Origin: Macrostomum lignano
Taxonomy: Eukaryota
Assembly: GCA_002269645.1 (NCBI GenBank)
Contig: NIVC01000169.1
Coordinates: 1 to 64,000, forward strand
DNA: 64,000 nt
Reading direction: 5' to 3'
The notes beneath the pieces were generated by a model that did not search any database, had not been told where the DNA came from, and saw nothing but the letters and a program-made list of their open reading frames with translations. Numbering within the stretch: the first letter of the stretch is position 1; each line of letters starts with the position of its first letter. Positions 1 to 35,094 of this stretch are shown here, in pieces. A program made the translations under genes and the position numbers.

Positions 1-1668
1 TTAACCTAAATATATTCAATTTTTTCAGTTATTAAATTATCTATGTCTTAAATTTATATGCAATACTTGCTTCAAAAAATAAGCTGTCACATCATGTTTT
101 AAAATTATATTAAAATGAAGCATGCCAAAAGAACTTTGCTAACTCCTTGCTATGCTGTGCAGCAGTACTTGTTGCATGCAAGAATTTTCTCTTAAAAACA
201 TCTTTAAGAGTATAGATCTATTAGTGTTACAACAATACATGGCCTTTTTATATTGCAACAATAAATAATGACCTTTTGGGTTGCATAAAAACCTTTTTAG
301 CTAATAATTTGATGGTGATTTTTTATTTGTTTGACTTTCTATATTGTTCTATTGTTATAAAATATATTGTTATATTACTTTATTCTTTATTTATATTGTA
401 TTATTACTTTTAATATGTTAATTTTTAAGAATTGTCAGCATTTCTTGTATATATATAATAGGCTAGCTGCTTTGCAAATAAACAAAGCATTATTGGCATG
501 CCAATGTGTAGATAATATTGTTGTTTTTGGCATAGTACTGTGGGAGAAGCATTGCCAATAAATAATTGATAATAACAGTTTGCTTTTTTACTTATAACTA
601 AATAAAAAAATTAGATAATATTTATTTAGCTAGCATTACTTAAATAAGGCTTATTTTTTAGCCAATTTCAGTCAAATATAAGTTCATAGCAATTAAAGGT
701 CAGATAGTTTCTTGATTTTGATCCCAAAGTCCTGGAATCTTGACTCTAAAATGAGAAATAAAGAATAGGTTTTGATGATTCAAAATTGATAGAATTAGTA
801 ATTATTTAAATTCATTTTATTTCAACTTTTAGTTGTTACTTTGTTTACTACTATTGTTTTTACTTTTTGATTTTAATCAACTATATGGACCTACAAACTG
901 TGGTACAAAAGACCTAATCTCAATTCCTTAATCCTAATCCCAAACTCAAGAAAAAAATTATTCTAATCTAATCTTGCCTGATGACTTAACTTAAATCCTA
1001 TCTGATCTCTATTAACAATGTCTGTTCAATCAAAGTTATTCAAAATTGATTGAACAATATAATTAAACAGGTTGAGATTTATGAAAAGCAATTGAGCCAT
1101 AAAGTCCATCATTTTGATATTTTTAAAGATTTATGATAAATAGATATAGGCAACTCGTCTTTAATTTACTATTTATAATTTTTGGCATATACTATTATTC
1201 AAGGTATGACATTTTACTATGCCATAAAGTTAAGCTAATGATGTAAAAAATAATTTAAAAACTTTTTTGGAAAGCAAATTTGGATTATATATATATAATA
1301 GGCAATAAGACTTTCTATTATTTTTATATTCCAATTCAAGCATTTCTAAGCACCTGCAAAAGTGGAATTTTTAATATGCACAATATGCTTTTTCAATGTT
1401 TTAATAGTGTTACAAAATTGATTGTAGATACAGTAATATACTTATAAAGAAAAGTGTTATATTAGCATTATATGTAAATAAAACTGTAGTGTCTTTAGAT
1501 ATTGCTTTTGATATTGCTTTTAAATGTAAACAAATTTAAATTTTTTACACTTATTTCAGCTGCAGTGTTATATTTAATAATAATTTTCTTTTTATAATAT
1601 TTTGTCACACATTGCAGTATTTCATAAAATAATTATCCACCTGTCCCACCACCGCTGCTTCTTCGCAG

Positions 1669-4600
1669 AAACATGGGCACCAGCGCGAGGATGTCAGTCC
1701 TAGTCGGCCGCAGCTTTCCTGTCCGTCTGTTTGTCCTCTGTGCGGCAGCGCAGTTCGCATAGCTCAGTGCGGCTGGATGCGAGCAATGCCAGTGTGCGAC
1801 AATGCCCAGTGTCTGTACCCTATGGTGTCCGAGCTGCCTGCCGCCAAACCTAGCCAGGCCCTACACAGACATGCCAGCTAGTCCGCCAGCTGCTAGTTCA
1901 TCTTCTCCGACAGCTAAATTGGATCATTCCGATGCTGACAGCCAGGCTGCATCTATTGAATCAGTTAGCCATCTGCCAGTGGAACCAGATGAAGTGTTTG
2001 TTCACACAATGACCGAGCCTGATCGGTCTGGTCCGTTTACTGCCGCCGCGCTAACTACTGTTCTCTGCGGTCCTGTCCAGCGGCGAGCCAGTGCGGCAGC
2101 TTCAACTTCATCCGGCACCCTGGCCGCGTGCAGCCGCGCCTACGCTAAAGCGCTGCGACTAACCAGAGCGTCGTTGCACCCGGCGCAGGTCTCCTCTGGA
2201 CGAGTTTCAACGAGGCGTCAGTTTCGCAATTTGGAACTTGTCGGCCTGGCCGATATTGAACGGTCGGTGCTGCGCGAGCTGGACTCGCTAGATAGATTAG
2301 TGGCTAAGCCACTCTCCCTAAGCGTCAGCGATGTTCGCGACGATTTTTATGAGACCGCGCATCGGCTATTGAAATCCGACAAGCGATTGGCTAAACAATT
2401 CCAGTCTGTTCACACCCTGCGCCAGGTCTGCACTGTGTGCTTTAAGCAGCACGTTAGCCGGTAAGATGAATAATAAATTGCCTCGGCGCTGGGTGTTCGT
2501 TTTCGTGTGAACAATTACAGCAATTGTGATATTGGTCCAGATCAAGGTTTTAGTCTAGTAAGATTCTTAGACAGTGCTTAACAATAACTTAATGGCCATT
2601 TTTGTGTTTCTGAGTACACGGCGTTATTAACGCTCGTATTGGGTTTGTTAAGCGTCAGAGTTGCAGTGCCATTTGGCATCCTGGGTCCAAGTTCAGATCT
2701 TTAAACAAGTTTCAGAATTCAAAATAAAAAAAATATCAACACCCCTCTACCTCTACCCTTTACACTGCTAAGTCTCTGACCGATAGAAGTTGCAGAAATC
2801 TGCAAACTCCATGTTTACAGATTACCCAACCATTTGACAATTGATAGAAGTCTTGAAAATCCTAAAAATCCATATAATTATAGAGTTATTAATGCCTAAA
2901 ACAGAGGTTAAAATACAAAAAATATATCATTTAAACCAAATGATATCCAGCTTAGAAAAAAACAGGGTGCCAATGTGTCACCCAGGGTTGAAATTTAGGA
3001 TAACGAAATTAATTTAACGCACGCTATGACAAAAAGCCAGTGTAAGACAGAGCAGTACTTCATTAATTTGTTACCGTTTCGTATTCCCAATAATAAACAA
3101 ATGCACAATTACTCTCATTTGTTAGGCAAAAAGCCACCGTACTACGATTGAGCGATCCGGCTACAGATTTCGATCTATTTGATCCCAACAAGCGAGTCTT
3201 CTTGCGGCCTTGCCAACACTGCAGGGCGCCGCAGCAGCGCGTTTTGTTGCGCTGGGAAAAGTACGCGTTGAACTTATGTTGAATAATAATTTAATGTATT
3301 TGTTTGAGACAATGGGATTTTAATTGTCAAGTCTTGTTATTTTTCTCCAGATCCTCAGACGGCCGCCAGCCAATCTCGGACGCAGTTTTCCTAGAGGCCC
3401 GCGACGGCTTGCCCGGCCCAATCCAGCTGAATAAGAGCCTGCGCACGCACGATGGCCTGGCCCTGATACCTACGGCAGCTGTGCAACGATTGACTCGTAG
3501 CAGCCAATCTAACAATCAATTTTATTACTTTATTTGGCTATACAGTCGGGACAGTAAGTTTTGCTTTAATAACTAGCCGACTCTAGTGTGCTTGCGTGTG
3601 TGGTCTGACTGGACTCGCAGATACTATACTAGACCTGCCACTTGGCCAAATTGGCCATTTCAAAATTTGGAGAGGACGCAATCGTAAAAGTTGTTAGAGC
3701 AAGAACAAAACTAGTGGGTTAACTGGTTAAAAATAATAAAACGGGTCAAACTGTTTTCTAAGCTAAATACTTTCTACTGTAACTGTGTGTAGCACGTTCT
3801 AGAATCCATTATACTAAAAGTTGCATTTCTGTCTTTTATTAGGGTGTTTTTAAAATTTTATTTTAAACTTTTTCAGTGTCTAGTCTGTGTGAATGAATAT
3901 TATACTTGTGCCTGTTTTCTATCATAGTGTTTTAAGTACAAGTATTGACTATATAAATGCTATTGTATGTATATTTGTAGACATTCTTTGTGTCTTACCA
4001 CTTTAGGGCAAGCCCGCATCGGTGATCGAAGTGTTATTAATTCGATTCTTGTCGAAAATAGCACTTATTGTGCTGATGCGAGATTGCGATATACTTATAG
4101 TCAGGTGTGGACTTTGCAGAAAAGAAAACGAAATCTTTACGGCTTGCTAAAACAAAAAAAATTGTTTAATCTATTGAGAATTACATATAAACTATAAATC
4201 TGAATTGAAAATCAGTTATGCAAAAAGAACCGAAGTTCACAGCTAGAAACCGACTTTACGGCTTACCAGCATTACCTAGTCCTAAAAATCCAGTCAGAAA
4301 CCGACTTTGCGGCTTTCCAACATTACCTAAAAATCCAGTCAGAAACCGACTTTACGGCTTACCAGCATTACCTAGTCCTAAAAATCCAGTCAGAAACCGA
4401 CTTTGCGGCTTACCAGCATTACCTAGTCCTAAATATCCAGTCAGAAACCGACTTTACGGCTCACCAGCATTACCTAGTCCTAAATATCCAGTCAGAAACC
4501 GACTTTACGGCTTACCAGCATTACCTAGTCCTAAAAATCCAGTCAGAAACCGACTTTGAGGCTTTCCAACATTACCTAAAAATCCAGTCAGAAACCGACT

Positions 4601-7600
4601 TTACGGCTTACCAGCATTACCTAGTCCTAAAAATCCAGTCAGAAACCGACTTTGCGGCTTACCAGCATTACCTAGTCCTAAATATCCAGTCAGAAACCGA
4701 CTTTACGGCTCACCAGCATTACCTAGTCCTAAATATCCAGTCAGAAACCGACTTTACAGCTTACCAGCATTACCTAAAAATCCAGTCAGAAACCGACTTT
4801 ACGGCTTTCCAACATTACCTAAAAATCCAGTCAGAAACCGACTTTACGGCTTACCAGCATTACCTAGTCCTAAATATCCAGTCAGAAACTGACTTTACGG
4901 CTTACCAGCATTACCTAGTCCTAAATATCCAGTCAGAAATCGACTTTACGGCTTACCAGCATTACCTAGTCCTAAATATCCAGTCAGAAACCGACTTTAC
5001 GGCTTACCAACATTACCTAAAATCCAGTCAGAAACCGACTTTACAGCTTACCAACATTATCTAAATATCCAGTCAGAAACCGACTTTACGGCTTACCAAC
5101 ATTATCTAAATATCCAGTCAGCAACCGACTTTACGGCTTACCAACATTATCTAAATATCCAGTCAGAAACCGACTTTACGGCTTACCAACATTATCTAAA
5201 TATCCAGTCAGAAACCGACTTTACGGCTTACCAACATTATCTAAATATCCAGTCAGAAACCGACTTTACGGCTTACCAACATTATCTAAATATCCAGTCA
5301 GAAACCGACTTTACGGCTTACCAACATTATCTAAATATCCAGTCAGAAACCGACTTTACGGCTTACCTAGTCCTAAATATCCAGTCAGAAATCGACTTTA
5401 CGGCTTACCAGCATTACCTAGTCCTAAATATCCAGTCAGAAACCGACTTTACGGCTTACCAACATTACCTAAAAATCCAGTCAGAAACCGACTTTACGGC
5501 TTACCAACATTATCTAAATATCCAGTCAGAAACCGACTTTACGGCTTACCAACATTATCTAAAAATCCAGTCAGAAACCGACTTTACGGCTTACCAACAT
5601 TATCTAAATATCCAGTCAGAAACCGACTTTACGGCTTACCAACATTATCTAAATATCCAGTCAGCAACCGACTTTACGGCTTACCAACATTATCTAAATA
5701 TCCAGTCAGAAACCGACTTTACGGCTTACCAACATTATCTAAATATCCAGTCAGAAACCGACTTTACGGCTTACCAACATTACCTAAAATCCAGTCAGAA
5801 ACCGACTTTACGGCTTACCAACATTATCTAAATATCCAGTCAGAAACCGACTTTACGGCTTACCAACATTACCTAAAAATCCAGTCAGAAACCGACTTTA
5901 CGGCTTACCAACATTATCTAAATATCCAGTCAGAAACCGACTTTACGGCTTACCAACATTATCTAAAAATCCAGTCAGAAACCGACTTTACGGCTTACCA
6001 ACATTATCTAAAAATCCAGTCAGAAACCGACTTTACGGCTTACCAACATTATCTAAAAATCCAGTCAGAAACCGACTTTACGGCTTACCAACATTATCTA
6101 AAAATCCAGTCAGAAACCGACTTTACGGCTTACCAACATTTTCTAAATATCCAGTCAGAAACCGACTTTACGGCTTACCAACATTATCTAAATATCCAGT
6201 CAGAAACCGACTTTGCGGCTTACCAACATTATCTAAATATCCAGTTAGAAACCGACTTTATGGTTTGCTAATAATACCAAAAAATCCAGTCAGAAACCGA
6301 CTTTACGCCTTACCAGCATTTTTTGTAAGAGAACTTTACAGCCTACAGAAATAATTTTGGATTAGAAAATTTTATTGCCTTTAAAACTAAAAAAACGATT
6401 CTTGTATAAAGTATAAAAGATCTAATTAAAAACCACGCGGTGCCTAAAATCATTATAAATCAAGAGTCTTCCCAGTGAGAGACTGACTTTACGGCTATAT
6501 AGTTGCGAATGATAATTATTAAGCACAAAGGAAGGAGCCAGTGCGGCTTGGTGGCGGCTCGCGAATCAACTTCAAGAAGGTTCGACTAAGGTAAAATGCT
6601 CCTTCCTGATGAGTTGCTTACTTGCTCTACATATAGTTTGATTAAGTCAGGCTCCCACTGAACAAATGGTCTTGAAAAGTTAGCCATTAATCGCGTGCAA
6701 CAAAACTCATTGAAAAGTTGAAATTCAAGTAAGTTCCGACCCGACTTATCTGCAAGCATCCAGTTTCGTTAATAAACCGTAGATTATAAGTAATTTTTGC
6801 TCCCTTTGATGCCGTCTGGGTTTCCTTTACACTCACTCTAATAATCTCGTGACTAAAAAATGTGCCAAGCAATAAACAGTATATCAAGCGTCAATATAAA
6901 AATGCCAATCTAGAGGTGAAATTGATTGATAAGTCGGGTAAGTCTGGCTATCGACCATAGACAAAACGAATGACTTCTACACTGGCACCACAGGTTGGCA
7001 TTCTATGTTTACGCTCGATATTCTATGGTAATATCTGGTCTGACCTGTCAATAAAGTTAAGCATACGTAATTGGTACAGTCAACAATTAGCTCATATTAA
7101 AAACAGGTAACAGAATTTAGTCTCCTTTTTAGCCCAAGCTGCTTCTCTTAAACTGTGCCATTTTAACCCTACCAGACCGATATCTGTCACTATATATTAA
7201 TCTGTAGATGCCCGCTGGATGCGCCTGGGTCCAAATAGCGACTCTGCTCTGCCGGCCCTGGCCTGCCATGACATTGCCTCGGCGCCGAACTTTCAGTCTG
7301 GCGAATTAGTCGCCGCACTGTTTGAACGCGACTGTCCAGCTGGCGACGCTGGCGGCACAGAGCCGTCTAGTAGCTTTACTAAAACCTGCGACGGGTCTGG
7401 GCGGAGCTCGGCCGCTCTGCCTCCAGTTTATCGACAGCCACCCGCTGCTGCTGCTGTGACCGCTCCGCCAGTTGCTGCGACCGCCGATGCCAACAATGAC
7501 GAGTTGGACCTTCTAGACGAATTGTTCGGCACGCCTCCGCCGCAGTCCACAGTAAGCCCCAGCGCCAACCTTCAATCAAGACTTCGTTCCGTGATGGCAA

Positions 7601-7998
7601 AACGTCGCGCCGATTCGGCCGTTTCGTCAGCGTCGGCGTCTGTCGGTGCAGCCTCGGTTCGTTCGGATCCGACAGTTTGCGGCCAGCTGCCGCTGCCGGC
7701 CAGCTCCGGCCGCGGTTTTGTACTGTCGCGTTTCCTCAGCTCCGCCGCTAAGCCGGCCGACGATCGACGACTGCCGGCTTACAGCGAGGACCGACACCTG
7801 CTAGCGCCGGCTGACGAGCAGCCGCGCCGGCGACGGCGACCCGGCTCTGTCGGCGAGGAGGAACAGGAGCAGCAGGCGGCTGAAGCATCGGCAGCGCTAC
7901 GGGCCGAGCCGCAGTTGAAGCGGGTGCGCACAGCGGAACAGGGACTGCAGGTGGATGCGCAGCGGGCATCGCTACTAGAGTTGGCCAAGTTCAAATAA
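1669..7998 (+). CDS. USPL1: USPL1-like (SUMO isopeptidase family) protein, probably catalytically dead. Exons ~1669-2460 (frame break near 1855-1880), 3126-3260, 3351-3553, 7208-7998; first exon/ATG not identified
   Basis: Phase-consistent GT-AG junctions at 2460/3126, 3260/3351 and 3553/7208. The spliced protein contains CPLC...CDNAQCLYP (like the USPL1 N-terminal CPxC...CEDLQCIYP), VRDDF..LLKSDKRLAKQF..CTVC, RPCQHC..QQRVLLRWEK, VFLEARDGLP, NNQFYYFIW and GELVAALFER, in the same order as human USPL1 motifs recalled from memory. Confidence 0.75.
4240..6320 (+). repeat. 45/51-bp minisatellite in the USPL1-like intron
   Basis: Unit aaatatccagtcagaaaccgactttacggcttaccaacattatct, with a variant carrying an extra agtcct. 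Confidence 0.95.
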
Positions 7999-8764
7999 AT
8001 TATAAATATTAACCCTATAGTTTGGACACCCAAACAGTGCTCCTTTGCCGTAATGCGCCGTCTATTTGTATATAAGCTTGTTCTGTTCTCTTAATGTCAG
8101 TTATGCAGCCTGTGCGGTCTTTGTGTGTTTAACTATTTGCTTGCTATAAGCATTATCTGAATATAATAAAATATAATGCAAAAAAACATTTTGCTCTATT
8201 TTCTCTGTTCAGGAATGCTTAGTAATTAATGCTGTATTGTTCAAATCTATCGAACGGTAAAATTTGCTTTGTAATTATTTTATATATTAAAGTACAAGCA
8301 GAGATTAAAGTACATAATAACCGATAAGCCGCTGGTAAACGTGCAAAGTACATATACAATCGTACATATTGCTAATTTCAAATATCGGTGCACTAGTACT
8401 AGATTAACAGTCAGCCAGATTAGTTTATCTTAGTTTCTGATAAAACAACAAAAAATTAATTTGATTTTAGAGGGTAGAAAAAGCACGCAGAGAACTACTG
8501 TAGGTGTACATGTACATGGCGCACGGACAACTGCAGTAGCAGGGTGGTACACTTGATTTTCTTAGAAATGAGCTAGAGGCTGATTAGGAACGTTTAATCG
8601 GATTTTTCTCGACTGAATTTGTCTATGGCAAATTTGTTTTGTTTTGGCCATAGACATAAATAAACGGGAGACTATTTCCAATTGGCCGCGGTACTTTACT
8701 GAAATCGACTATCAATCAAATATACGATAGCTGATAATATCAATGAAGTTGTCAAAGCGTTATC

Positions 8765-11700
8765 TTAGCCTGGCTGGGACTGGACATCCCAGTAGGCCGG
8801 AGGCGGCGGCTGCTGCGACAGATTAATCGGGTATGGTGGCGGCTGTTGCTGCTCCTGTCCGTAGTAGTTTAACGGCTGCTCAGTCGGCTTGTTGATCAAG
8901 TCATTTGAAGCTGGAGCCAAGGTCGGCCGATTATCATGGCCACCCGCGGCTACAACAATCGGTTCTGCTACTTGAACGTTTGACATTTGTAGCGCCGGAT
9001 TGGTGTGCGCCACGGATACTGAGGCGCTTTGCGATTGGCTGAAATTTAGGTGTACATGGCATATTACATGTACACATGATTGAGTCTTGGGCGGATTTTG
9101 ACCTCCGTTGGTATTGTCAGATTCGATTATGACTACTGAGAAAAGTATACAAATAAAGATTTGAATCGTAGAATGTATCACATATCGCAAAGATGTCACG
9201 AAACGTCTGTGCACACAGAGTGGTGGGAAAGTACGATGTGTGATAATGGCCGACTGACAGAGGCAAACCAAGCCAGAAACCGGTCTCGGTATGCCTGCAT
9301 GAAGTTTGACCCATTTTTTAGTATCACAGGTAAATTGAGTGCGAATGATTCATCATGTCAGAATTTCTCTATTGATAAGTAGAAAGTATGGAGTGTAGCG
9401 CGAAAAATCTATGCAATGAACATACTAGACGTTGTTCAGCGCTAGCCTAGCTCACACATTGGATGGAGCCAGTTGAGGGCAATATCACACCCAGGTACAT
9501 GCCATGTACAGTTGTACACGACAGAACTGACGATTTTGGCCCAAGGACAGTTATTTTACAGGAAAACTATAGCTATTGAAGGTGATCTTCTAAACTATTA
9601 ACATTAACTTTAACGGTAAACTCTAACTTTAGCTGGTTCATTTTTGTCACTATAGTTTCCCAAAAGCTTGAAACATTAAGCATCTTCAACACGAGAAAAT
9701 GTTTTATGATATAATCTACCTTCACGAACTTTACGCACCTGTTCTTGTGCCTTTTGTAGCCCTTGTAGCATCGGTCAGCGATGTAGACGCAGACGCAGCA
9801 GCCCAGCACCACGCCAACGCAGAGTCCGATGACTCGGCCGCTGCTGCAATTGACGCATGCGAATTTGTACTTTTACTTTGACCTTCTCGTATCTTAATCT
9901 TACTTTAAGCTTACTCATGATTCATATGAGCTTGATCTCATGATTGTTATGAGCTTGATCTCGTGACTGTTATGAGCTTGATCTCATGATTCATATGAGC
10001 TTGATCTCATGATTGTTATGAGCTTGATCTCGTGACTGTTATGAGCTTGATCTCATGACTGTTATGAGCTTGATCTCATGATTGTTATGAGCTTGATCTC
10101 ATGATTGTTATGAGCTTGATCTCATGATTGTTATGAGCTTGATCTCGTGACTGTTATGAGCTTGATCTCATGACTGTTATGAGCTTGATCTCATGATTGT
10201 TATGAGCTTGATCTCGTGACTGTTATGAACTTGATCTCATGATTGCTATGAGCTTGATCTCGTGATTGTTATGAGCTTGATCTCGTGATTGCTATGAGCT
10301 TGATCTCATGATTGCTATGAGCTTGATCTCATGACTGTTATGAGCTTGATCTCGTGACTGTTATGAGCTTGATCTCATGATTGTTATGAGCTTGATCTCG
10401 TGACTGTTATGAACTTGATCTCATGATTGCTATGAGCTTGATCTCGTGATTGTTATGAGCTTGATCTCGTGATTGCTATGAGCTTGATCTCATGATTGCT
10501 ATGAGCTTGATCTCATGACTGTTATGAGCTTGATCTCATGATTGTTATGAGCTTGATCTCATGATTGTTATGAGCTTGATCTCGTGATTGTTATGAGCTT
10601 GATCTCATGATTGCTATGAGCTTGATCTCGTGATTGTTATGAGCTTGATCTCGTGATTGCTATGAGCTTGATCTCATGATTGCTATGAGCTTGATCTCAT
10701 GACTGTTATGAGCTTGATCTCATGATTGCTATGAGCTTGATCTCATGATTGTTATGAGCTTGATCTCATGATTGCTATGAGCTTGATCTCATGATTGCTA
10801 TGAGCTTGATCTCATGATTGTTATGAGCTTGATCTCATGATTGCTATGAGCTTGATCTCATGATTGCTATAAGCTTGATCTCATGATTGCTATGAGCTTG
10901 ATCTCATGATTGCTATGAGCTTGATCTCATGATTGCTATGAGCTTGATTTCACTCTTCACATGAGCTTGATCTCATAATTGCTATGAGCTTGATTTCACT
11001 CTTCTCATGAGCTTGATCTCATAATTGTTATGAGCTTGATTTCACTCTTCTCATGAGCTTGATCTCATGATTGTTATGAGCTTGATCTCATGATTGTTAT
11101 GAGCTTGATCTCATGATTGTTATGAGCTTGATCTCATGATTGTTATGAGCTTGATCTCATGACTGTTATGAGCTTGATCTCATAATACTTATGAGATTGA
11201 TCTCATGATTTTTATGAGCTTGATCTCATTATTCTTATGAGCTTGATCTCATGATTTTTATGAGCTTGATCTCATGATTCTTATGAGCTTGATCTCATGA
11301 TTTTTATGAGCTTGATCTCATGATTGTTATGAGCTTGATCTCGTGACTGTTATGAGCTTGATCTCATGACTGTTATGAGCTTGATCTCATGATTGTTATG
11401 AGCTTGATCTCATGATTGTTATGAGCTTGATCTCATGATTGTTATGAGCTTGATCTCATGATTCTTATGAGCTTGATCTCATGATTTTTATGAGCTTGAT
11501 CTCATGATTGTTATGAGCTTGATCTCATGATTGTTATGAGCTTGATCTCATGATTGTTATGAGCTTGATCTCATGATTGTTATGAGCTTGATCTCGTGAC
11601 TGTTATGAGCTTGATCTCATGACTGTTATGAGCTTGATCTCATGATTGTTATGAGCTTGATCTCGTGACTGTTATGAGCTTGATCTCATGACTGTTATGA

Positions 11701-14700
11701 GCTTGATCTCGTGACTGTTATGAGCTTGATCTCATGACTGTTATGAGCTTGATCTCATGATTGCTATGAGCTTGATCTCATGATTGTTATGAGCTTGATC
11801 TCATGATTGTTATGAGCTTGATCTCGTGACTGTTATGAGCTTGATCTCGTGACTGTTATGAACTTGATCTCATGATTGCTATGAGCTTGATCTCGTGATT
11901 GTTATGAGCTTGATCTCGTGATTGCTATGAGCTTGATCTCATGATTGCTATGAGCTTGATCTCATGACTGTTATGAGCTTGATCTCGTGACTGTTATGAG
12001 CTTGATCTCATGATTGCTATGAGCTTGATCTCGTGATTGTTATGAGCTTGATCTCATGATTGCTATGAGCTTGATCTCGTGACTGTTATGAGCTTGATCT
12101 CATGATTGTTATGAGCTTGATCTCATGATTGTTATGAGCTTGATCTCATGATTGTTATGAGCTTGATCTCGTGATTGTTATGAGCTTGATCTCATGATTG
12201 TTATGAGCTTGATCTCATGATTGTTATGAGCTTGATCTCATGATTGTTATGAGCTTGATCTCATGACTGTTATGAACTTGATCTCATGATTGTTATGAGC
12301 TTGATCTCGTGATTGTTATGAGCTTGATCTCGTGATTGCTATGAGCTTGATCTCATGATTGCTATGAGCTTGATCTCATGACTGTTATGAGCTTGATCTC
12401 ATGATTGTTATGAGCTTGATCTCATGATTGTTATGAGCTTGATCTCGTGATTGTTATGAGCTTGATCTCATGATTGCTATGAGCTTGATCTCATGATTGT
12501 TATGAGCTTGATCTCATGATTGTTATGAGCTTGATCTCATGATTGCTATGAGCTTGATTTCACTCTTCACATGAGCTTGATCTCATAATTGCTATGAGCT
12601 TGATTTCACTCTTCTCATGAGCTTGATCTCATAATTGTTATGAGCTTGATTTCACTCTTCTCATGAGCTTGATCTCATGATTGTTATGAGCTTGATCTCG
12701 TGACTGTTATGAGCTTGATCTCATGATTGTTATGAGCTTGATCTCGTGACTGTTATGAGCTTGATCTCATGATTCATATGAGCTTGATCTCATGATTGTT
12801 ATGAGCTTGATCTCGTGACTGTTATGAGCTTGATCTCATGATTGTTATGAGCTTGATCTCATGATTGTTATGAGCTTGATCTCGTGACTGTTATGAGCTT
12901 GATCTCATGATTGTTATGAGCTTGATCTCATGATTGTTATGAGCTTGATCTCGTGATTGTTATGAGCTTGATCTCGTGACTGTTATGAGCTTGATCTCAT
13001 GACTGTTATGAGCTTGATCTCATGATTGTTATGAGCTTGATCTCGTGACTGTTATGAACTTGATCTCATGATTGCTATGAGCTTGATCTCATGATTGCTA
13101 TGAGCTTGATCTCGTGATTGCTATGAGCTTGATCTCGTGATTGCTATGAGCTTGATCTCATGATTGTTATGAGCTTGATCTCATGATTGCTATGAGCTTG
13201 ATCTCATGATTGTTATGAGCTTGATCTCATGATTGCTATGAGCTTGATCTCATGATTGCTATAAGCTTGATCTCATGATTGCTATGAGCTTGATCTCATG
13301 ATTGCTATGAGCTTGATCTCATGATTGCTATGAGCTTGATTTCACTCTTCACATGAGCTTGATCTCATAATTGCTATGAGCTTGATTTCACTCTTCTCAT
13401 GAGCTTGATCTCATAATTGTTATGAGCTTGATTTCACTCTTCTCATGAGCTTGATCTCATGATTGTTATGAGCTTGATCTCATGATTGTTATGAGCTTGA
13501 TCTCATGATTGTTATGAGCTTGATCTCATGATTGTTATGAGCTTGATCTCATGACTGTTATGAGTTTGATCTCATGATTCCTATGAGCTTGATCTCATGA
13601 TTTTTATGAGCTTGATCACATTATTCTTATGAGCTTGATCTCATGATTGTTATGAGCTTGATCTCATGATTTTTTGAGCTTGATCTCATGATTCTTATGA
13701 GCTTGATCTCATGACTTTTATGAGCTTGATCTCATGATTTTTATGAGCTTGATCTCATGATTCTTATGAGCTTGATCTCATGACTTTTATGAGCTTGATC
13801 TCATGATTTGCCAGCAACTCACTCCTCCAGAAGCTGCAGCACCTCTGTCCATCCTCCTCCCCGCAGCAGTACACCTGGTCCTCCCGGCCCGGCTCGATCG
13901 GGCACACGAACAGGCCATAGACAGTTCGGTTCCGGTAGAGCCACGGCTCCACCACAGAGCTGTTGTGCTCAGCCGGCAGGTCGTCAATCACGTTGAAGCA
14001 GAGGGTGGCGCTGTCGGAGTAGTCAGAGTGGCGTCTCCGCCAGTGCCAGGAGGAGAAGAAGATGCCGCTGGTGTAGGCGCGCCTGTTCACGCGGTAGCTG
14101 ACATAGTTGGGGGAGGGGGTGTACAGGGGGTAGTCACGACTATATTTAGCTTTCAAAGATAACCTAATTTAGGACGGGAAACTTCGTTTCTTAGAAAGTC
14201 ATGAATGTTGGTTCTAAGCGTCCTTTCCGTGACTGGCCATTTTTATTGTTTCATTAAAGTGAAATTCAAATACTTTTCAAGAAACTATAATTGTCACGTC
14301 CTTTGCTTTTACGAGTACACAGGCCATCCTGCGTTACAGGTGTTTAAGATTCGAACTCACGAGAATCGTTTGCTGACCAGTAGAGACATAGTGCTGTAGC
14401 CACTGCCTCTAGAAGAGCCATAGCGACCGCTGCTCCTACTGCCGCTGTACCTACTGCTGTACCTGCCGCCGCTGAACCTGCCACCGCCTCTGGCACCTGA
14501 GCTGCTACCGGCTGCGTGTGATCGAGGAGAGGCGATTTTAATCATGACAATCTACCTGACTCACTGCATGACAATCTACCTGACTGACTGCATGACAATC
14601 TACCTGACTCACTGCATGACAATCTACCTGACTCACTGCATGACAATCTACCTGACTCACTGCATGACAATCTACCTGACTCACTGCATGACAATCTACC

Positions 14701-15637
14701 TGACTCACTGCATGACAATCTACCTGACTCACTGCATGACAATCTACCTGACTCACTGCATGACAATCTACCTGACTCACTGCATGACAATCTACCTGAC
14801 TCACTGCATGACAATCTACCTGACTCACTGCATGACAATCTACCTGACTCACTGCATGACAATCTACCTGACTCACTGCATGACAATCTACCTGACTCAC
14901 TGCATGACAATCTACCTGACTCACTGCATGACAATCTACCTGACTCACTGCATGACAATCTACCTGACTCACTGCATGACAATCTACCTGACTCACTGCA
15001 TGACAATCTACCTGACTCACTGCATGACAATCTACCTGACTCACTGCATGACAATCTACCTGACTCACTGCATGACAATCTACCTGACTCACTGCATGAC
15101 AATCTACCTGACTCACTGCATGACAATCTACCTGACTCACTGCATGACAATCTACCTGACTCACTGCATGACAATCTACCTGACTCACTGCATGACAATC
15201 TACCTGACTCACTGCATGACAATCTACCTGACTCACTGCATGACAATCTACCTGACTCACTGCATGACAATCTACCTGACTCACTGCATGACAATCTACC
15301 TGACTCACTGCATGACAATCTACCTGACTCACTGCATGACAATCTACCTGACTCACTGCATGACAATCCACCTGACTCACTGCATGACAATCTACCTGAC
15401 CCACTGCATGACAATCTACCTGACACACTGCATGACAATCTACCTGACTCACTGCATGACAATCTATACCTGACCCACTGCATGACAATCTACCTGAAAC
15501 TGCATATCTATCTACCTGATACTGTACTACAATTCTGTGCACATTAAAGAACCTGGAACAACAGCAGCAACTGGAATCTTACCGATAGCCAGCAGAAGAA
15601 TGAGGACAATAAGACAGTTGATAAGCTCCAGTTTCAT
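8765..15637 (-). CDS. Shisa-like single-pass membrane protein, copy A. Exons 15637-15583, 14511-14361, 14097-13823, 9843-9739, 9038-8765
   Basis: Signal peptide MKLELINCLIVLILLLAIA; Gly/Ser/Arg-rich exon; C*C*CC*CC domain (TLCF...VCP...YCCG...RCCSFW); TM segment VIGLCVGVVLGCCVCVYIA; tail with PPPY and PPAYW. As assembled, exon 3 is 1 nt short of keeping phase. Confidence 0.75.
9915..13805 (+). repeat. 23-bp minisatellite, ~3.9 kb, Shisa-like A intron 3
   Basis: Unit ttatgagcttgatctcatgattg. Confidence 0.97.
14543..15500 (+). repeat. 24-bp highly homogeneous minisatellite, Shisa-like A intron 1
   Basis: Unit catgacaatctacctgactcactg, about 39 copies. Confidence 0.97.
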
Positions 15638-16329
15638 GTTTTACGATCAGCAAACAATCTTTGCCACACTGCAATCTTCAGCTTTGCTGAACTCTAAAAA
15701 GGAACAAAAATGTTCTTCGCTCAACTACTTGTATGGGACACCTCCCTGCCCTCTCCAGCACTTCTATAGCGGAGAAGGGGCAGAATCGATAATGGCTGCT
15801 CTGTCCCCGGGGGTGAGAGTTATAGAGGTGTTGCCATGACAACGGAGTCGCCCTCCCCTCTCACTGCACTCTCGTCCTCCCGGTTTCTCTCCCACGTCTC
15901 ACTCGCTGTCCTTCCCTGTTCCCCAAAATAAAATGGGAGTACAAAAACGCGAAATAATACATTTACAAAAGACTTAACGCTTTAACGAACATTATATTTT
16001 TATTTCGTTGGATTTAATCTACCTTACTAAAAGATATGGTTTCTTTTCACAGAGACAGCGCTATGCAAATGCTGTTAAGCCAAAGGGAGAAGAAAATTTG
16101 TTTTTTGATTTGAGCGATAAGACACGGCTGGAAAGGGAAGGAGTTTTAAAATAAAGCACAAAAATTAGCGTACGACTGAATATTTGTAAAATACAAAAGC
16201 GATACACGAGGCTAAATTATATATTCGAGCCTGATGCTGCTGCAACTTGACTCTCAAACTATAGTTCAGATCACCGAGGATCGTTGGGGACCTCTGAGGA
16301 TTATTAGGGATCTCTATGAAATTACTTTG

Positions 16330-19260
16330 AGAATCTCTGAAGATCTTTGAGAATCTCTGAAGATCTCTGAGGATCTCTGAAGATCTCTGAGGATCTCTGA
16401 AGATCTCTGAGGATCTCTGAAGATCTCTGAGGATCTCTGAAGATCTATGGGAATCTTTGAGGATCTCTGAGGATCTCATATATTTCTAGAGATATCTCTA
16501 AGGATCCCTATGGATCTATGGCGATCTCATATATTTCTAGAGATATCTAAGGATCGCTAGAGATCTCTGACGATCTCAAACATTTCTAGAGATATCTAAG
16601 GATCGCTAGAGATCTCTGGGGATTTTTGGTGGGTCTCTAGGTATCCCTGGGGATCTCAAATATTTCTAGAGATATCTAAGGACCGCTAGGGATCTCTGGC
16701 GTTCTCAAATATTTCTAGAGATATCTAAGGATCGCTAGAGATCTCTGGGGATTTTTGGTGGGTCTCTAGGTATCCCTGGGGATCTCAAATATTTCTAGAG
16801 ATAACTAAGGATCGCTAGGGATGTCTGGCGATCTCGAATATTTCTGGGGATATCTAAGGATCGCTAGAGATCTCTGGGGATTTTTTGGGGGTCTCTAGGT
16901 ATCTCTGGGGATCTCAAATATTTCTAGCGATATCTAAGGATCGCTAGGGATGTCTGGCGATCTCGAATATTTCTGGGGATATCTAAGGATCGCTAGAGAT
17001 CTCTGGGGATTTTTTGGGGGTCTCTAGGTATCTCTGGGGATCTCAAATATTTCTAGCGATATCTAAGGATCGCTAGGGATGTCTGGCGATCTCGAATATT
17101 TCTGGGGATATCTAAGGATCGCTAGAGATCTCTGGGGATTTTTTGGGGGTCTCTAGGTATCTCTGGGGATCTCAAATATTTCTAGCGATATCTAAGGATC
17201 GCTAGGGATGTCTGGCGATCTCGAATATTTCTGGGGATATCTAAGGATCGCTAGAGATCTCTGGGGATTTTTTGGGGGTCTCTAGGTATCTCTGGGGATC
17301 TCAAATATTTCTAGCGATATCTAAGGATCGCTAGGGATGTCTGGCGATCTCGAATATTTCTGGGGATATCTAAGGATCGCTAGAGATCTCTGGGGATTTT
17401 TTGGGGGTCTCTAGGTATCTCTGGGGATCTCAAATATTTCTAGCGATATCTAAGAATCGCTAGGGATGTCTGGCGATCTCAAATATTTCTGGGGATATCT
17501 AAGGATCACTAGAGATCTCTGGCGATCTCAAACATTTCTAGAGATATCTAAGGATCGCTAGAGATCTCTGGGGATTTTTGGTGGGTCTCTAGGTATCCCT
17601 GGGGATCTCAAATATTTCTAGCGATATCTAAGGATCGCTAGGGATGTCTGGCGATCTCGAATATTTCTGGGGATATCTAAGGATCGCTAGAGATCTCTGG
17701 GGATTTTTTGGGGGTCTCTAGGTATCTCTGGGGATCTCAAATATTTCTAGCGATATCTAAGGATCGCTAGGGATGTCTGGCGATCTCGAATATTTCTGGG
17801 GATATCTAAGGATCGCTAGAGATCTCTGGGGATTTTTTGGGGGTCTCTAGGTATCTCTGGGGATCTCAAATATTTCTAGCGATATCTAAGGATCGCTAGG
17901 GATGTCTGGCGATCTCGAATATTTCTGGGGATATCTAAGGATCGCTAGAGATCTCTGGGGATTTTTTGGGGGTCTCTAGGTATCTCTGGGGATCTCAAAT
18001 ATTTCTAGCGATATCTAAGGATCGCTAGGGATGTCTGGCGATCTCGAATATTTCTGGGGATATCTAAGGATCGCTAGAGATCTCTGGGGATTTTTTGGGG
18101 GTCTCTAGGTATCTCTGGGGATCTCAAATATTTCTAGCGATATCTAAGGATCGCTAGGGATGTCTGGCGATCTCGAATATTTCTGGGGATATCTAAGGAT
18201 CGCTAGAGATCTCTGGGGATTTTTTGGGGGTCTCTAGGTATCTCTGGGGATCTCAAATATTTCTAGCGATATCTAAGGATCGCTAGGGATGTCTGGCGAT
18301 CTCGAATATTTCTGGGGATATCTAAGGATCGCTAGAGATCTCTGGGGATTTTTTGGGGGTCTCTAGGTATCTCTGGGGATCTCAAATATTTCTAGCGATA
18401 TCTAAGGATCGCTAGGGATGTCTGGCGATCTCGAATATTTCTGGGGATATCTAAGGATCGCTAGAGATCTCTGGGGATTTTTTGGGGGTCTCTAGGTATC
18501 TCTGGGGATCTCAAATATTTCTAGCGATATCTAAGAATCGCTAGGGATGTCTGGCGATCTCAAATATTTCTGGGGATATCTAAGGATCACTAGAGATCTC
18601 TGGCGATCTCAAATATTTCTAGAGACATCTAAGGATTGCTAGGGATGTTTGGCGATCTCAAATATTTCTGGGGATATCTAAGGATCGCTAGAGATCTCTG
18701 GCGATCTCATGTATTTCTAGGGATATCTAAGCATCGGTAGGGATCTCTGGGGATTTTTTGGGGGTCTCTAGGTATCTCTGGGGATCTCAAATATTTCTAG
18801 AGATATCTAAGGATCGCTAGGGATCTCTGGCGATCTCATATTTTTAGAGATAACTAAGGATCGCTAGGGATGTCTGGCGATCTCAAATATTTCTGGGGAT
18901 ATCTAAGGATCGCTAGAGATCTCTGGCGATCTCAAACATTTCTAGAGATATCTAAGGATCGCTAGAGATCTCTGGCGATCTCATATATTTCTAGGGATAT
19001 CTAAGTATCGCTAGGGATCTCTGGGGATTTTTTGGGGGTCTCTAAGTATCTCTGGGGATCTCAAATATTTCTAGAGATATCTAAGGATCGCTAGGGATCT
19101 CTGGCGATCTCATATTTCTAGAGATAACTAAGGATCGCTAAGGTCTCTGGCGATCTCATATATTTCTAGGGATATCTAAGCATCGGTAGGGATCTCTGGG
19201 GATTTTTTGGGGGTCTCTAGGGATCTCTGGGGATCTCAAATATTTCTAGGGATATCTAAA
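16330..19260 (+). repeat. Intergenic satellite: 10-bp gatctctga-type repeats grading into a 129-bp higher-order repeat
   Basis: tcgctagagatctctgggg recurs at 16861 and 16990. The unit is an 80-bp plus a 49-bp related subunit. Confidence 0.92.
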
Positions 19261-19444
19261 GATCTCGAGAATATTTGGGTAACTCTGAGAATCTCTGAGA
19301 GGATCTCTGAGAATATTTTAGCAAAATGACATAAGGATTTCTGCTGACTAGAGTGTTCCAGAGAAATCAAATCCTTGAGAATCCAAAAACCCTGCCCGAG
19401 TCCCTGAAGATCCTGTCAAGTCGCTCAGCTCATTGCTGAGCGCC

Positions 19445-22253
19445 TTATCTCCGACTAACCGCCCAGTACGGAGGCGGCGGCGTGTCGGGTTGTTGCGGAT
19501 AATCGACATCCATCTGCTGGCGCCGCTGCCTCTCGTCCCACATCTCCTCTAGCACTGTGTCGTATCTTGGCGGAGATTCTGGTTTGTCATCTTGAGCTGC
19601 TTCTGGTGCTGCTGCTGTAGACGATGATGATGAGGCTGCTGCTGCTGCACCAGCTTCAGCTGCAGCCGCTGGTTGCTCCGCTGTGGCACCTGGATTGCCT
19701 CCAGCATCTGCCGAATGCTCTTCGACTTGGTTTCTGCGCGAAGAAGATGATTATTTATGACACATGCATGAGGTACGAGTAGTATGGATCATTCCTGTCT
19801 CTAAATTCTGTCACAAAGTTAAATCTAAAAAATATTTCCCTGAAAATGATGCTTTTAGAAGCTCTTAACTTCAAACTTCTTGTACATGTACTAACCAACT
19901 TCCAAAAGCTTAAAAGATGCCTAACTTCATATTCCTCCAAGTTTAACATTCTCCAAGTTAAACATTCTCCAAGGTAAACATTCTTCAGGCTAAACATTCT
20001 CCAAGGTAAACATTCCCCAAGCTAAACATTCCCCAAGTTAAACATTCCCCTAGCTATAAACATTTCCCAACTTCATACTTCACTATCAAGTTTTAAAATA
20101 TCCCAAAAATTTGGTCAGTTTACAACCAAGGACCACTAGGAACTCTTCGATGTAGTCTAGTCTGTCTAGTCTAGTAGTCCTTGGTTGGAAATTTTACGAA
20201 CCTTCTGACGCCGCGGGACCTGACGCAGGCCTGCCAAAGGCGGATCGAAGCCACGAAACCGGAGGCCAGACAGCACACCAAGCCGAAGGTTGCAGAAGCG
20301 ACCCGGGACGCGCTGGGTGGTTGGGTGGAGTCAAGTGTGAGTCAAGTGTGAGTCAAATGTGAGTCAACTATGAGTCAAATGTGAGGAAACTGTGAGTCAA
20401 CTATGAATCTGGTGTGAGTCAAATGTCAGTCAACTATGAATCAAGTGTGAGTCAACTATGAGTTAAGTGTGAGTCAATGTGAGTCAAGTGTAAGTCAAGT
20501 GTGAGTCAACTATGAATCAAGTGTGAGTCAAGTGTGAATCAAATGTGGGTCAACTGTGAGTCAACTATGAGTCAACTATGATTCAGATATGAGTTTAGTC
20601 TAGTGTAAGATAGCTCTGAACTCACTCCTCCCAGAAGCTGCAGCACCTCTGTCCATCCTCCTCCCCGCAGCAGTACACCCGGTCCTCCCGGCCCGGCTCG
20701 ATCGGGCAGACGAACAGGCCATAGACAGTACGGGGGTTCGATTCCGTGCGCAACCACAAACAGTTGGCCAGGCGGTTGTAATGCAATTCGCAACCATGAG
20801 GGCCAGCCCCCAAGGCACAGAGAGTGTACATGCCTGACGATTAGAAAGTCAGGGCTGCTGTAAACCCTGTGTGAGCGTGTGTATGAGTGCTGTGCCTGCG
20901 TACAGCATTGGCGCGCTTGTATGCTCAGGAGTCAGCGGAATGGCGGTATGAGTGCTTGTCTTCTAGCTGGCCCCAGTCCCCACTAATCCAAGGTCATCAA
21001 GCACCCAATGAAGTTCACTCACGGAAATTTGCTACTAACAAACACAGACACACTTCCGGAGCTACGGAAACTGGAGCGGCTGCTCCGACTGCCGGTTGAG
21101 CTCTTGCCAATCGCGGGGCAAAGCATCAGCTCTGCGTGAGTTGCGTGGATGCTTGGGCTGAGTTTTTCTGAGTCCATGATAGATGGAATTTCGGGTTAAG
21201 GAAAAAGGAGAGAATAAGGAGAGTGAGAGAGATGAGAGATAGAGAGAGGAGAGAAGGAGAGAAGGAGACAGGGAGAGAGGAAGAGAGAGGAGGGAGGGAG
21301 AGAGGATAGATAGAGGAGAGTTAGAGGAGAGAGTAGAGAGGGAGAGAGAGGAGAGAGAGAAGAGATAGAGAGGAGAGAGAGGAGGGAGGAGATAGGGAGA
21401 AAGGGAGAGAGAGGAGAGAGAAGAGAGAGGATAGAAGAGAGAGGGAGAGAGAGAGGAGAGAGAAGAGAGAGGATAGAAGAGAGAGGGAGAGAGAGAGGAG
21501 AGAGAAGAGAGAGGATAGAAGAGAGAGGGAGAGAGAGGAGAGAGAAGAGAGAGGGAGAGAGAAGAGAGAGAAGAGAGAGGGAGAGAGAGGAGAGAGAAGA
21601 GAGAGGATAGAAGAGAGAGGACAGAAGAGAGAGGGAGAAAGAGGAGAGAGAAGAGAGAGGACAGAAGAGAGAGGATAGAAGAGAGAGAAGAGAGAGGATA
21701 GAAGAGAGAGAAGAGAGGATAGAAGAGAGAGGATAGAAGAGAGAGAAGAGAGAGGATAGAAGAGAGAGAAGAGAGAGGACAGAAGAGAGAGGATAGAAGA
21801 GAGAGAAGAGAGAGGATAGAAGAGAGAGAAGAGATATGATAGAAGAGAGAGGGAGAGAGAGAAGAGAGAAGAGAGAGGACAGAAGAGAGAGGATAGAAGA
21901 GAGAGAAGAGAGAGGATAGAAGAGAGAGAAGAGAGAGGATAGAAGAGAGAGAAGAGAGAGGATAGAAGAGAGAGAAGAGAGAGGATAGAAGAGAGAGAAG
22001 AGAGAGGATAGAAGAGAGAGAAGAGAGAGGATAGAAGAGAGAGAAGAGAGAGGATAGAAGAGAGAGGATAGAAGAGAGAGGATAGAAGAGAGAGGATAGA
22101 AGAGAGAGAAGAGAGAGGATAGAAGAGAGAGGACAGAAGAGAGAGGGAGATGCAGATACACGGTAGAAGGCAAATATATCAAGCGATCTTACCAGCAGTG
22201 ATAGCGATGCAGAGTGCCCAACTCACAGCAGAGATATTTCTGTTGCAAAGCAT
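19445..22253 (-). CDS. Shisa-like single-pass membrane protein, copy B, possibly a pseudogene. Exons 22253-22193, 21131-21023, ~20895-20626, 20312-20202, 19733-19445
   Basis: Same exon phases as copies A and C. Signal peptide MLCNRNISAVSWALCIAITA; Ser/Arg-rich exon ending VSSKFP; VCPIEPGREDRVYCCGEEDGQRCCSFWE; TM VASATFGLVCCLASGFVASI; tail with PPRY and PPPYW. Exon 3 cannot be read through without one lesion. Confidence 0.65.
20335..20585 (+). repeat. ~10-bp degenerate repeat (tgtgagtcaa), Shisa-like B intron
   Basis: Direct reading of the sequence. Confidence 0.85.
21200..22150 (+). repeat. Polypurine (GA-rich) repeat tract, Shisa-like B intron 1
   Basis: gagagaagagagaggatagaa-type units; almost purely A/G. 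Confidence 0.92.
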
Positions 22254-34480: not shown

Positions 34481-35094
34481 ACTGCCCACTGATCACTATT
34501 AGCTCTCTCTCTGCTCGCAATTAGATCTCACTGATCTCTTTAAGTTTCTCTCCGCTATCTTCATCTCTCCTCTACTTGCCTTCTCAGTGTTTTAATTTCT
34601 TATTATTTCCCAGAATTTTTCTCTACTTTCTGTGTTTCGAATCAACCCAGTCTCCTCTATTATCTTTCCTGGAAATTTTGCTCCTTTTGCGTGATGTGCT
34701 CGCAAATATGGTTATAGAAGCGATTATAGGAATGACCTTTTCTATTCCGAGCTTCATTCTTGACTCAAACAAAGAATTAGACAGGTTCGCACGTTTTCCG
34801 AATACTTTAATCGTCAAGGGGGATCTGAGCTTGGTCTGGGATAAATCAAAGTCTAAGAATAGAATCTTATTAACAGGACGTGATTGACCGGTCGTTTTCA
34901 CGGATCAAACGATAGAAAGAGGATGAAAGCAGCATACTGAGGACTTGAGGGTTGAGCAAGAGCTCAATCAGATGGCTGCATCCTGTGTGTCACACTGCAA
35001 ATTGCGACACCATGGTGAAAATCAGAAAAAAATTTATAGAATATTTCTAGATCGAACGAAAAAAAGCTGAGAAGATAAATACATTTTTGCAAAG

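Follow-up and report, generated by a model that had tools for sequence, protein, structure and literature searches.

The first 64 kb of contig NIVC01000169.1 of the flatworm Macrostomum lignano (assembly GCA_002269645.1), hereafter called the window, contain a four-exon gene whose product is a well-supported remote descendant of USPL1 (Peptidase C98), a small ubiquitin-like modifier (SUMO) isopeptidase with the fold of the ubiquitin-specific proteases (USPs). The most likely reading of this gene, which we hold with moderate confidence, is that it encodes a non-catalytic scaffold from the USPL1 lineage. The alignments firmly indicated that the catalytic His is replaced by Gln321 and suggested that the catalytic Cys is probably lost, and purifying selection on the gene, as opposed to decay, was supported. 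Residues of the window protein are numbered from the ATG at 1802.

Window positions 1-13576 matched NIVC01000169.1:1-13576 at 100% identity. The window gene was compared with two groups of relatives, referred to as type A and type B. The type-A sequences were a genomic sister copy of the window gene in M. lignano (L002), a near-identical sister product from the same species (P0001), and a cDNA contig of the orthologue from another Macrostomum species (L001), whose protein (P0002) is 71% identical. The start of the window is overlapped by a second contig of the M. lignano assembly (L004; NIVC01003003.1:1-16225, reversed). Type B was represented by paralogue B, whose gene lies at 6001-9966 of L003 (NIVC01000303.1:337588-353553, reversed) and encodes the protein P0004. 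In addition, two database entries were used, the UniRef model A0A1I8HDA4 (P0051) and P0049, the 259-aa annotated product of exon 4 on the overlapping contig.

Relationship to vertebrate USPL1

Peptidase_C98 (PF15499, USPL1) was the sole Pfam family with a weak match to the USP-like region. Against its curated cut-off of 27 bits, the window product scored 20.2 bits, P0001 21.1 bits, P0002 29.4 bits, and paralogue B 17.7 bits, and the matches spanned only profile positions ~69-202 of 272. The generic Pfam UCH family gave no match to the flatworm proteins even at E values up to 1. A profile-profile comparison (hhalign) of four flatworm with nine vertebrate sequences aligned 343 columns, from an N-terminal zinc ribbon to the ..(W/F)ER(K/D) end, with a probability of 96.1% and an E value of 3.3e-9, and a second run gave a probability of 93.6%, an E value of 2.1e-7, and a score of 63.6. 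The controls scored far lower, at 15.3 for the reversed alignment and at most 23.2 among 20 alignments with shuffled columns; their probabilities were at most 0.8%, and the shuffled alignments gave E values of at least 0.07. When the zinc ribbon was left out, the E value rose to 1.2e-5, indicating that the ribbon contributes real signal. The query for the vertebrate USPL1 set was a reconstruction of the human catalytic domain, based on the supplement and primers of PMC8983731 and used for searching alone; this search returned 44 USPL1 proteins, all of them vertebrate. Sequence searches of the PDB returned RNase H matches, which were rejected as chance matches on the low-complexity tail.

For structure prediction, P0001 stood in for the window protein, and an AlphaFold2 model was computed from a 27-sequence alignment that included vertebrate USPL1. 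The top four Foldseek matches of this model were all human USPL1 (7p99_A, two chains of 7zju, and 7zjv; E values of 6e-9 to 4e-8), followed by USP12, USP2, USP1, and USP21. The predicted local distance difference test (pLDDT) score averaged 60; it reached 86-95 in the zinc ribbon and the fingers and was <50 in the Cys-box region. The model places five predicted helices before the sheet, the order of the USPL1 thumb and palm, and starts helix alpha1 between GPF and T. A model of paralogue B, predicted from a 5-sequence alignment, reached a pLDDT of 34 and was discarded.

The original prediction had named the window product a USPL1-like protein, and Pfam, the profile-profile alignment, and Foldseek all bore this out. 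The strings it quoted were present in the spliced product (PDRSGPFTAAALTTVL at 2018-2065, CTVC, CQHC, NNQFYYFIW, and ARWMRLGP), and the human motifs it had cited agreed with those of real vertebrate USPL1 (..NALCWLDCILSALVH.. and ..NHFITWILDADGSWLECDD..). Its claim that the four zinc ligands of the finger are intact also held, since all four Cys residues aligned to the vertebrate ligands. It had overlooked the zinc ribbon at the N terminus, which aligns to vertebrate CPACxxKG..LCEDLQCIYPLG and is also present in P0001, P0002, and P0004, as well as two frameshifts in exon 1, the near-identical sister copies, and the orthologue that carries a His.

It is improbable that the protein is some other divergent member of the USP fold whose resemblance to USPL1 is superficial. 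An identity to vertebrate USPL1 of 17-20%, the score of the window protein below the Pfam cut-off, and the poor retention of the SUMO-contact residues are what such an origin would predict, and the same can be said of the C-terminal USPL1 domain DUF4650 (PF15509), for which Pfam, at E values up to 1, gave no match in either the full-length protein or the product of exon 4, and of the UniProt name, which is only “USP domain-containing protein” (the label carried by a shorter isoform of paralogue B). However, Peptidase_C98 was the only USP-type Pfam match, with nothing from UCH at E values up to 1; a ribbon of the USPL1 type (CPxC..C..C-YP) is present and shifts the E value from 1e-5 without it to 3e-9 with it; and the human USPL1 structures ranked above those of all other USPs in Foldseek.

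The catalytic triad and the SUMO-contact residues

The triad of human USPL1 consists of C236, H456, and D472 (PMC8983731), and calibration on marmot USPL1 put Cys236, His456, and Asp472 at positions 11, 230, and 246 of the Pfam profile. The general base His456 paired with Gln321 in every alignment. Every type-A copy of M. lignano had Gln at this position, and the orthologue (L001/P0002) had a His there with the codon CAC, one transversion away from the CAA of the window gene. In paralogue B, the column held a Cys (DCFDY). Within type A, the loss of the His is confined to the M. lignano lineage.

The position of Asp472 depended on the alignment. When the RWMRLG strand was anchored on SWLECD through the conserved Trp, at the cost of one indel, Asp472 fell on Gly340; in the hhalign alignment, which needed two indels, CHD (352-354) lay on CDD, with His353 at the position of Asp472 and Asp354 at 473. 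The strand-anchored pairing thus requires one indel fewer, but neither pairing restores Asp472. No alignment put Asp or Asn at position 472. The corresponding residue of paralogue B was Ser or Glu, and Ser with the strand-anchored pairing.

Three alignments of the Cys box were considered, and two of them leave no nucleophile. In alignment A, that of the original prediction, Cys236 falls on Phe79/Thr80, at the start of the predicted helix FTAAALTTVL, which fits the five-helix order. In alignment C, produced by both MAFFT and hhalign, Cys89 pairs with the non-catalytic Cys of LCVQW, helix alpha1 is deleted, and Ser101 stands at position 236. Only alignment B, a linear extrapolation of the Pfam coordinates, retains a nucleophile, the invariant Cys89, and it was judged the least likely of the three. 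Within the Cys-box region, the G, AA, and C are invariant across both paralogue groups, and paralogue B lacks ~20 residues of the stretch linking the invariant Cys to the helix that follows. Residues 81-102 of the window protein correspond to helix 125-146 of the P0001 model, which has a pLDDT of <50.

The original prediction had held that the entire triad was replaced. That description stood for the His, now Gln321, and for position 472, where Asp and Asn are both missing; it is only probable for the Cys box, which could not be reliably aligned and has Cys89 nearby. The triad is also missing from paralogue B, and in type B the fold has long been maintained without a canonical active site.

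An alternative to the non-catalytic scaffold is that the protein still has isopeptidase activity through an unconventional active site, in which, for instance, Cys89 would be the nucleophile and would be helped by residues such as His353/Asp354 of the CHD motif. The invariance of Cys89 in both paralogue groups is in keeping with this, as are the extrapolation from Pfam, which puts the catalytic Cys at about residue 131 of P0002, adjoining Cys130, the placement of CHD on the CDD Asp box by hhalign, and the His of the orthologue. Furthermore, activity has been reported for USP53 and USP54, which had for a long time been annotated as pseudoenzymes (PMC12037411). Nevertheless, we consider such an enzyme unlikely. 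The His column holds Gln in all type-A copies of M. lignano and Cys in paralogue B; the oxyanion position has no Asn; Cys89 is followed by a weakly conserved Ala/Ser-rich stretch, deleted in paralogue B, and not by an amphipathic alpha1; and the secondary structure in the AlphaFold2 model has Cys89 within a helix or at its end, not at its start.

The surface that would receive SUMO was likewise changed. In human USPL1, SUMO2 is contacted by Arg324, Met330, Ser332, Phe335, Asn398, His421, Tyr451, Phe457, and His493 (PMC8983731). The stretch containing Arg324, Met330, Ser332, and Phe335 was gapped or non-conserved in the flatworm protein. Within the confidently aligned part, Asn398 was replaced by Gln250, His421 by Glu280, Tyr451 by Arg311, and His493 by Val367, and Phe457 alone had a plausible counterpart, Phe322 (or Tyr324). 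With one of the five confidently aligned contacts kept, the label “SUMO-binding” in the original prediction is unsupported by the aligned residues, although the protein may have co-evolved with the flatworm SUMO.

Gene structure, copies, and selection

The four-exon chain of the window gene is genuine. All three introns were of the GT..AG type and phase compatible, as judged from splice-site context and three-frame translation, and the coding length from ATG1802 was 1,788 nt, or 595 codons plus the stop codon, so that the open in-phase chain described in the original prediction was recovered. The extent it gave, 1990-7340, was incomplete, with the gene running from ~1668/1673 to 7998. The coordinates are collected in the table below.

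Features of the USPL1-like gene of Macrostomum lignano, in window coordinates
Feature	Position	Strand	Remarks
Trans-splice acceptor	between 1667 and 1668	+	..cttcgcag followed by AAACATGGGC; initiator ATG at 1673
Exon 1	1668/1673-2460	+	Donor CG/GTAAGA, between 2460 and 2461
Two 1-bp frame breaks	1686/1687 and 1841	+	C missing at 1686/1687, extra C at 1841, relative to L002, L004, and L001
N-terminal USPL1-type zinc ribbon, CPLC..(17)..CDNAQCLYP	1732-1821	+	CPLCGSAVRIAQCGWMRAMPVCDNAQCLYP in the frame-1 translation
Cys-box candidate region PDRSGPFTAAALTTVLCG (residues 73-90)	2018-2071	+	Predicted alpha1 after GPF; Cys89 codon at 2066-2068
First finger zinc-ligand pair, CTVC (Cys210, Cys213)	2429-2440	+	Paired with vertebrate CSQC/CSNC in every alignment
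Exon 2	3126-3260	+	Splice-site context and three-frame translation
Second finger zinc-ligand pair, CQHC (Cys249, Cys252)	3211-3222	+	AlphaFold2 pLDDT of 86-95
Exon 3	3351-3553	+	Donor A/GTAAGT; splice-site context
His box, NNQFYYFIW	3511-3537	+	Gln321 (CAA, 3517-3519) in the His456 column
Intron 3	3554-7207	+	GTAAGT..TAG, 3.65 kb; holds a 45-bp minisatellite, 44.6 copies, at 4245-6320
Exon 4	7208-7998	+	Stop codon TAA at 7996-7998; 263 open codons
Strand ARWMRLGP	7210-7233	+	Gly340 at 7228-7230
CHD	7264-7272	+	Residues 352-354, exon 4
ELVAALFER	7303-7329	+	Val367 in place of His493
Low-complexity tail	exon 4	+	Two motifs that paralogue B also has, LQSRLRSVMAKRR and FVLSRFL

The spliced leader of M. 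lignano is 35 nt long (PMC8629364). The orthologue cDNA L001 opens with ATTGCATG, which matches the 3' end of the spliced leader, and continues with AGCCATGGGC; on this basis, the trans-splice acceptor and the start codon of the window gene were set as listed. The N terminus of P0001 reads NMGTSAEDV, and both P0001 and P0002 carry the zinc ribbon in one frame with the initiator MGTSAED... In the window copy, the ribbon lies in a frame that differs from those of both ATG1673 and the gene body, and a stop codon stands between the two exon-1 indels in the ATG1673 frame.

Pseudogenization was first considered as the cause of these frameshifts and was dropped on the evidence of the overlapping contig L004 and of an indel-dominated pattern at the contig ends. 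L004 overlaps window positions 1-13457 (13.4 kb) at 99.45% identity, and the differences, 12 substitutions against 62 gap positions, were concentrated at 1-3125 and 12.5-13.4 kb, that is, at the two contig ends; between the window and L002, a 1.1-kb stretch further inside the contig had no indels. The frame was intact across exon 1 in L002, L004, and the cDNA L001. Since the differences at the contig ends were mainly indels and the frame was intact in these three other sequences, the exon-1 frameshifts are most likely assembly or consensus errors at a contig end and not biology. The pattern is most likely the product of consensus errors in long-read data where coverage is low at the contig ends, and the true protein would then have ~638 residues.

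Several further observations concern this end of the gene. L004 lacks one base at the acceptor of exon 2 (window position 3125), which probably accounts for a truncated 271-aa gene call. The overlap of NIVC01000169.1 and NIVC01003003.1 resembles an unmerged contig overlap that was broken inside a minisatellite and has consensus indel errors. In addition, if the spliced leader is joined at 1668, its ATG stands in the frame of the zinc ribbon and opens a 70-codon reading frame, MKHGHQREDVSPS..CPLC..CLYP..* (window 1668-1881); this reading frame depends on the C missing at 1686/1687 and is probably an artifact of the likely assembly error.

The junction of exons 3 and 4 was recovered in the UniRef model A0A1I8HDA4, which joins the two exons and reads ..LYSRDNARWMRLGP.., and in P0004, in which an intron lies at exactly the same codon and the flanking residues match (WLFNSD/SERWMAM in P0004 versus WLYSRD/NARWMRL in the window protein). 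L002 has a counterpart of intron 3 that is ~850 nt shorter. In the public annotation, the locus holds a single gene, BOX15_Mlig020691g1 (PAA88925.1), at 1802-3576 with ATG1802 as its start. The window gene is thus fragmented, as PAA88925.1 stops in intron 3 and exon 4 was called separately, appearing on the overlapping contig as a 259-aa gene of its own, and two likely consensus errors disrupt the N terminus of the gene. The products P0050, P0001, and P0002, from two species, pass the GTAAGT donor of exon 3 and end inside intron 3; the read-through stretches were 3554-3576 in the window, 1124-1223 in L001, and 11926-11948 in L002. L001 was trans-spliced to the spliced leader and had introns 1 and 2 removed, yet it continued into intron 3. 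The read-through could reflect retention of intron 3, polyadenylation within the intron (with an AATAAA near 3735), or an assembly broken by the 2-kb minisatellite, and from the transcripts and annotations of the two species, a truncated isoform or frequent retention of intron 3 is possible.

Selection was assessed against relatives at two distances. Versus the orthologue cDNA, the ratio of nonsynonymous to synonymous change (omega) was ~0.13 over 309 codons (pN 0.19, pS 0.67), an approximate value with dS saturated at about 1.7, and omega for the zinc ribbon, read in its conserved frame, was ~0.05. Versus L002, exon 1 had two synonymous and two nonsynonymous changes and exon 4, of equal length in both copies, had three synonymous and no nonsynonymous changes; by eye, exon 2 had three synonymous changes and exon 3 one nonsynonymous change. 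An omega of ~0.13 argues that the gene is not decaying, and the assertion in the original prediction that the loss of the triad was not random decay was upheld by this value and by the paralogue B protein, which is also without the triad.

At least three copies of type A are present in the genome, namely the window gene (also found on L004), L002, and the locus encoding P0051; type B likewise has at least three. M. lignano is reported to be a hidden polyploid with redundant copies (PMC10468722), and the multiple copies of both types fit that description. Paralogue B (P0004) is a full-length protein of 602 aa, is 32-35% identical, and is spliced at two of the same intron positions; both paralogue groups have intact open reading frames.

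In such a genome, the window copy might be a decaying pseudogene, with the loss of the triad being part of the decay. The redundancy reported in PMC10468722, the two exon-1 frameshifts with a stop codon between them, and the annotated product P0050, which ends in intron 3, would each suit this explanation, to which we give little probability. The indels match the assembly-error pattern (62 gap positions versus 12 substitutions, at contig ends), the frame is unbroken in L004, L002, and the orthologue cDNA, exon 4 is open over 263 codons with solely synonymous changes relative to L002, omega is 0.13, and the loss of the triad is common to a paralogue of 32-35% identity and is found in at least three intact copies.

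Elsewhere in the window, ~20 separate minisatellite arrays were found between 4245 and 63999, with repeat units 14-387 bp long and as many as 169 copies; examples lie at 9914-13808, 14543-15519, 16362-19266, 33007-34483, and 46471-48405. Several of the arrays are intronic, and their copy number varies between sister copies, so that from 9.9 to 20.6 kb the arrays amount to ~10.7 kb in the window versus ~3.9 kb in L002. A neighboring gene on the minus strand (8768-20950), with exons near 8768-9050, 9740-9860, and 20620-20950 and a large 23-bp array in an intron, is syntenic with L002 16288-21946, which has a 286-aa product with no Pfam match. Also on the minus strand, a 535-codon open reading frame at 28147-29754, in a stretch of 64% G+C, encodes C2H2 zinc fingers (Pfam zf-C2H2, E value of 3.7e-11) and probably belongs to a transcription-factor gene that has no connection with the USPL1-like gene.

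Possible role and comparison with known systems

Under the reading of the window protein as a non-catalytic scaffold, the missing Cys at the start of alpha1 would preclude papain-type cleavage of SUMO or ubiquitin conjugates, and the protein would have been kept for scaffolding. By analogy, its likeliest setting would be the nuclear pathway of small nuclear RNA (snRNA) transcription, the little elongation complex, and Cajal bodies, with the zinc ribbon, more constrained than any other part of the protein, as the link. The little elongation complex is suggested by the catalysis-independent role of vertebrate USPL1 and by a precedent in Drosophila. USPL1 is essential, and catalytically dead human USPL1 rescues knock-down phenotypes, with the in vivo role of the SUMO isopeptidase activity being unresolved (PMC10919355). 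Human USPL1 binds ELL and ICE1 (PMC3937775), and Drosophila CG8229, which resembles only the N terminus of USPL1 and has no catalytic domain, binds Ice1/Ice2 according to PMC3937775, citing Smith et al. 2011.

A number of points weigh against the non-catalytic scaffold. With regard to descent, the window protein itself scores under the Pfam cut-off, the AlphaFold2 model is of moderate quality (mean pLDDT of 60; template modeling scores of 0.32-0.45), and the Foldseek ranking is partly circular, as vertebrate USPL1 was in the AlphaFold2 input alignment. When 1.84 billion representatives were searched in full by HMMER with a P0001-plus-P0002 profile, the matches were all Macrostomum proteins and included no canonical USPL1, and sequence searches of the PDB with a single protein and with two- and four-sequence profiles found no USPL1. 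With regard to the active site, the Cys box is not confidently alignable, the invariant Cys89 lies within ~10 residues of the nucleophile site extrapolated linearly from the Pfam coordinates, and P0002 retains the His, so that the type-A lineage was possibly active until recently. Furthermore, the transcripts and annotations of two species (P0050, P0001, and P0002) run on into intron 3, and the exon 3-exon 4 junction of the window gene is known from gene prediction and the paralogue. Finally, the scaffold role and the placement with the little elongation complex are drawn by analogy.

A broader version of the scaffold reading, which we put forward tentatively and regard as somewhat doubtful, is that two old Macrostomum paralogue lineages keep a USPL1-derived pseudo-isopeptidase that is constrained at the ribbon and at the zinc site of the finger, and not at the active site or on the SUMO-facing surface, while its triad decays stepwise. 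As part of the same tentative proposal, close relatives would display successive stages of this decay: one species retains the His, and the column holds Gln in type A of M. lignano and Cys in type B. Selection acting on a protein with a dismantled active site and with most of its SUMO contacts dismantled would be independent evolutionary evidence for a structural job of USPL1, and such a lineage would mark the ribbon at the N terminus and the zinc site of the finger as the important elements. If the proposal is true and the protein acts at snRNA genes together with the little elongation complex, then Macrostomum would show, as an experiment of nature, that the essential function USPL1 had ancestrally does not depend on catalysis. 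M. lignano is amenable to RNA interference and transgenesis.

Compared with vertebrate USPL1 (human structure PDB 7P99), the flatworm protein shares the N-terminal CPxC...C.xxC-YP ribbon, the right-hand USP domain, the four-Cys finger site, and the Phe following the His position, and the motifs occur in a common order: LLK..F..C..C, TN/SDP, PC..C..Q, EGLP/DGLP, NN(H)F..W, W(L/M), and (W/F)ER. It differs in having Gln at His456, Gly or His at Asp472, an unrecognizable Cys box, and a segment corresponding to Arg324/Met330/Phe335 that is deleted or non-conserved. Furthermore, vertebrate USPL1 has ~1,090 aa, whereas the flatworm protein has ~640 aa with no DUF4650 detected.

Approximately 13% of deubiquitinases (DUBs) are classed as pseudo-DUBs (PMC10919355). 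Like the pseudo-DUBs of the USP fold, e.g., PAN2/USP52, the flatworm protein appears to have kept the fold, lost the catalytic residues, and been put to binding or scaffolding use; those proteins belong to ubiquitin-type USP lineages and have known partners, whereas the flatworm protein comes from the SUMO-specific USPL1 lineage. The divergent USP domains of USP53 and USP54 had likewise been labeled inactive purely on the basis of their sequence, and their activity as deubiquitinases, reported in PMC12037411, is a caution; the defect of the flatworm protein, which has no His, was judged to be more severe.

A further parallel is offered by Drosophila CG8229, compared here by its description in PMC3937775. 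Both would be invertebrate relatives of USPL1 that gave up the isopeptidase function and kept the N-terminal similarity, but CG8229 is without the catalytic domain, whereas the flatworm protein keeps a full, though disabled, USP domain and the zinc site. If the scaffold reading is true, then the Macrostomum protein would sit between vertebrate USPL1 and CG8229 as an intermediate form in which the ribbon was retained and the protease domain was retained but disabled.

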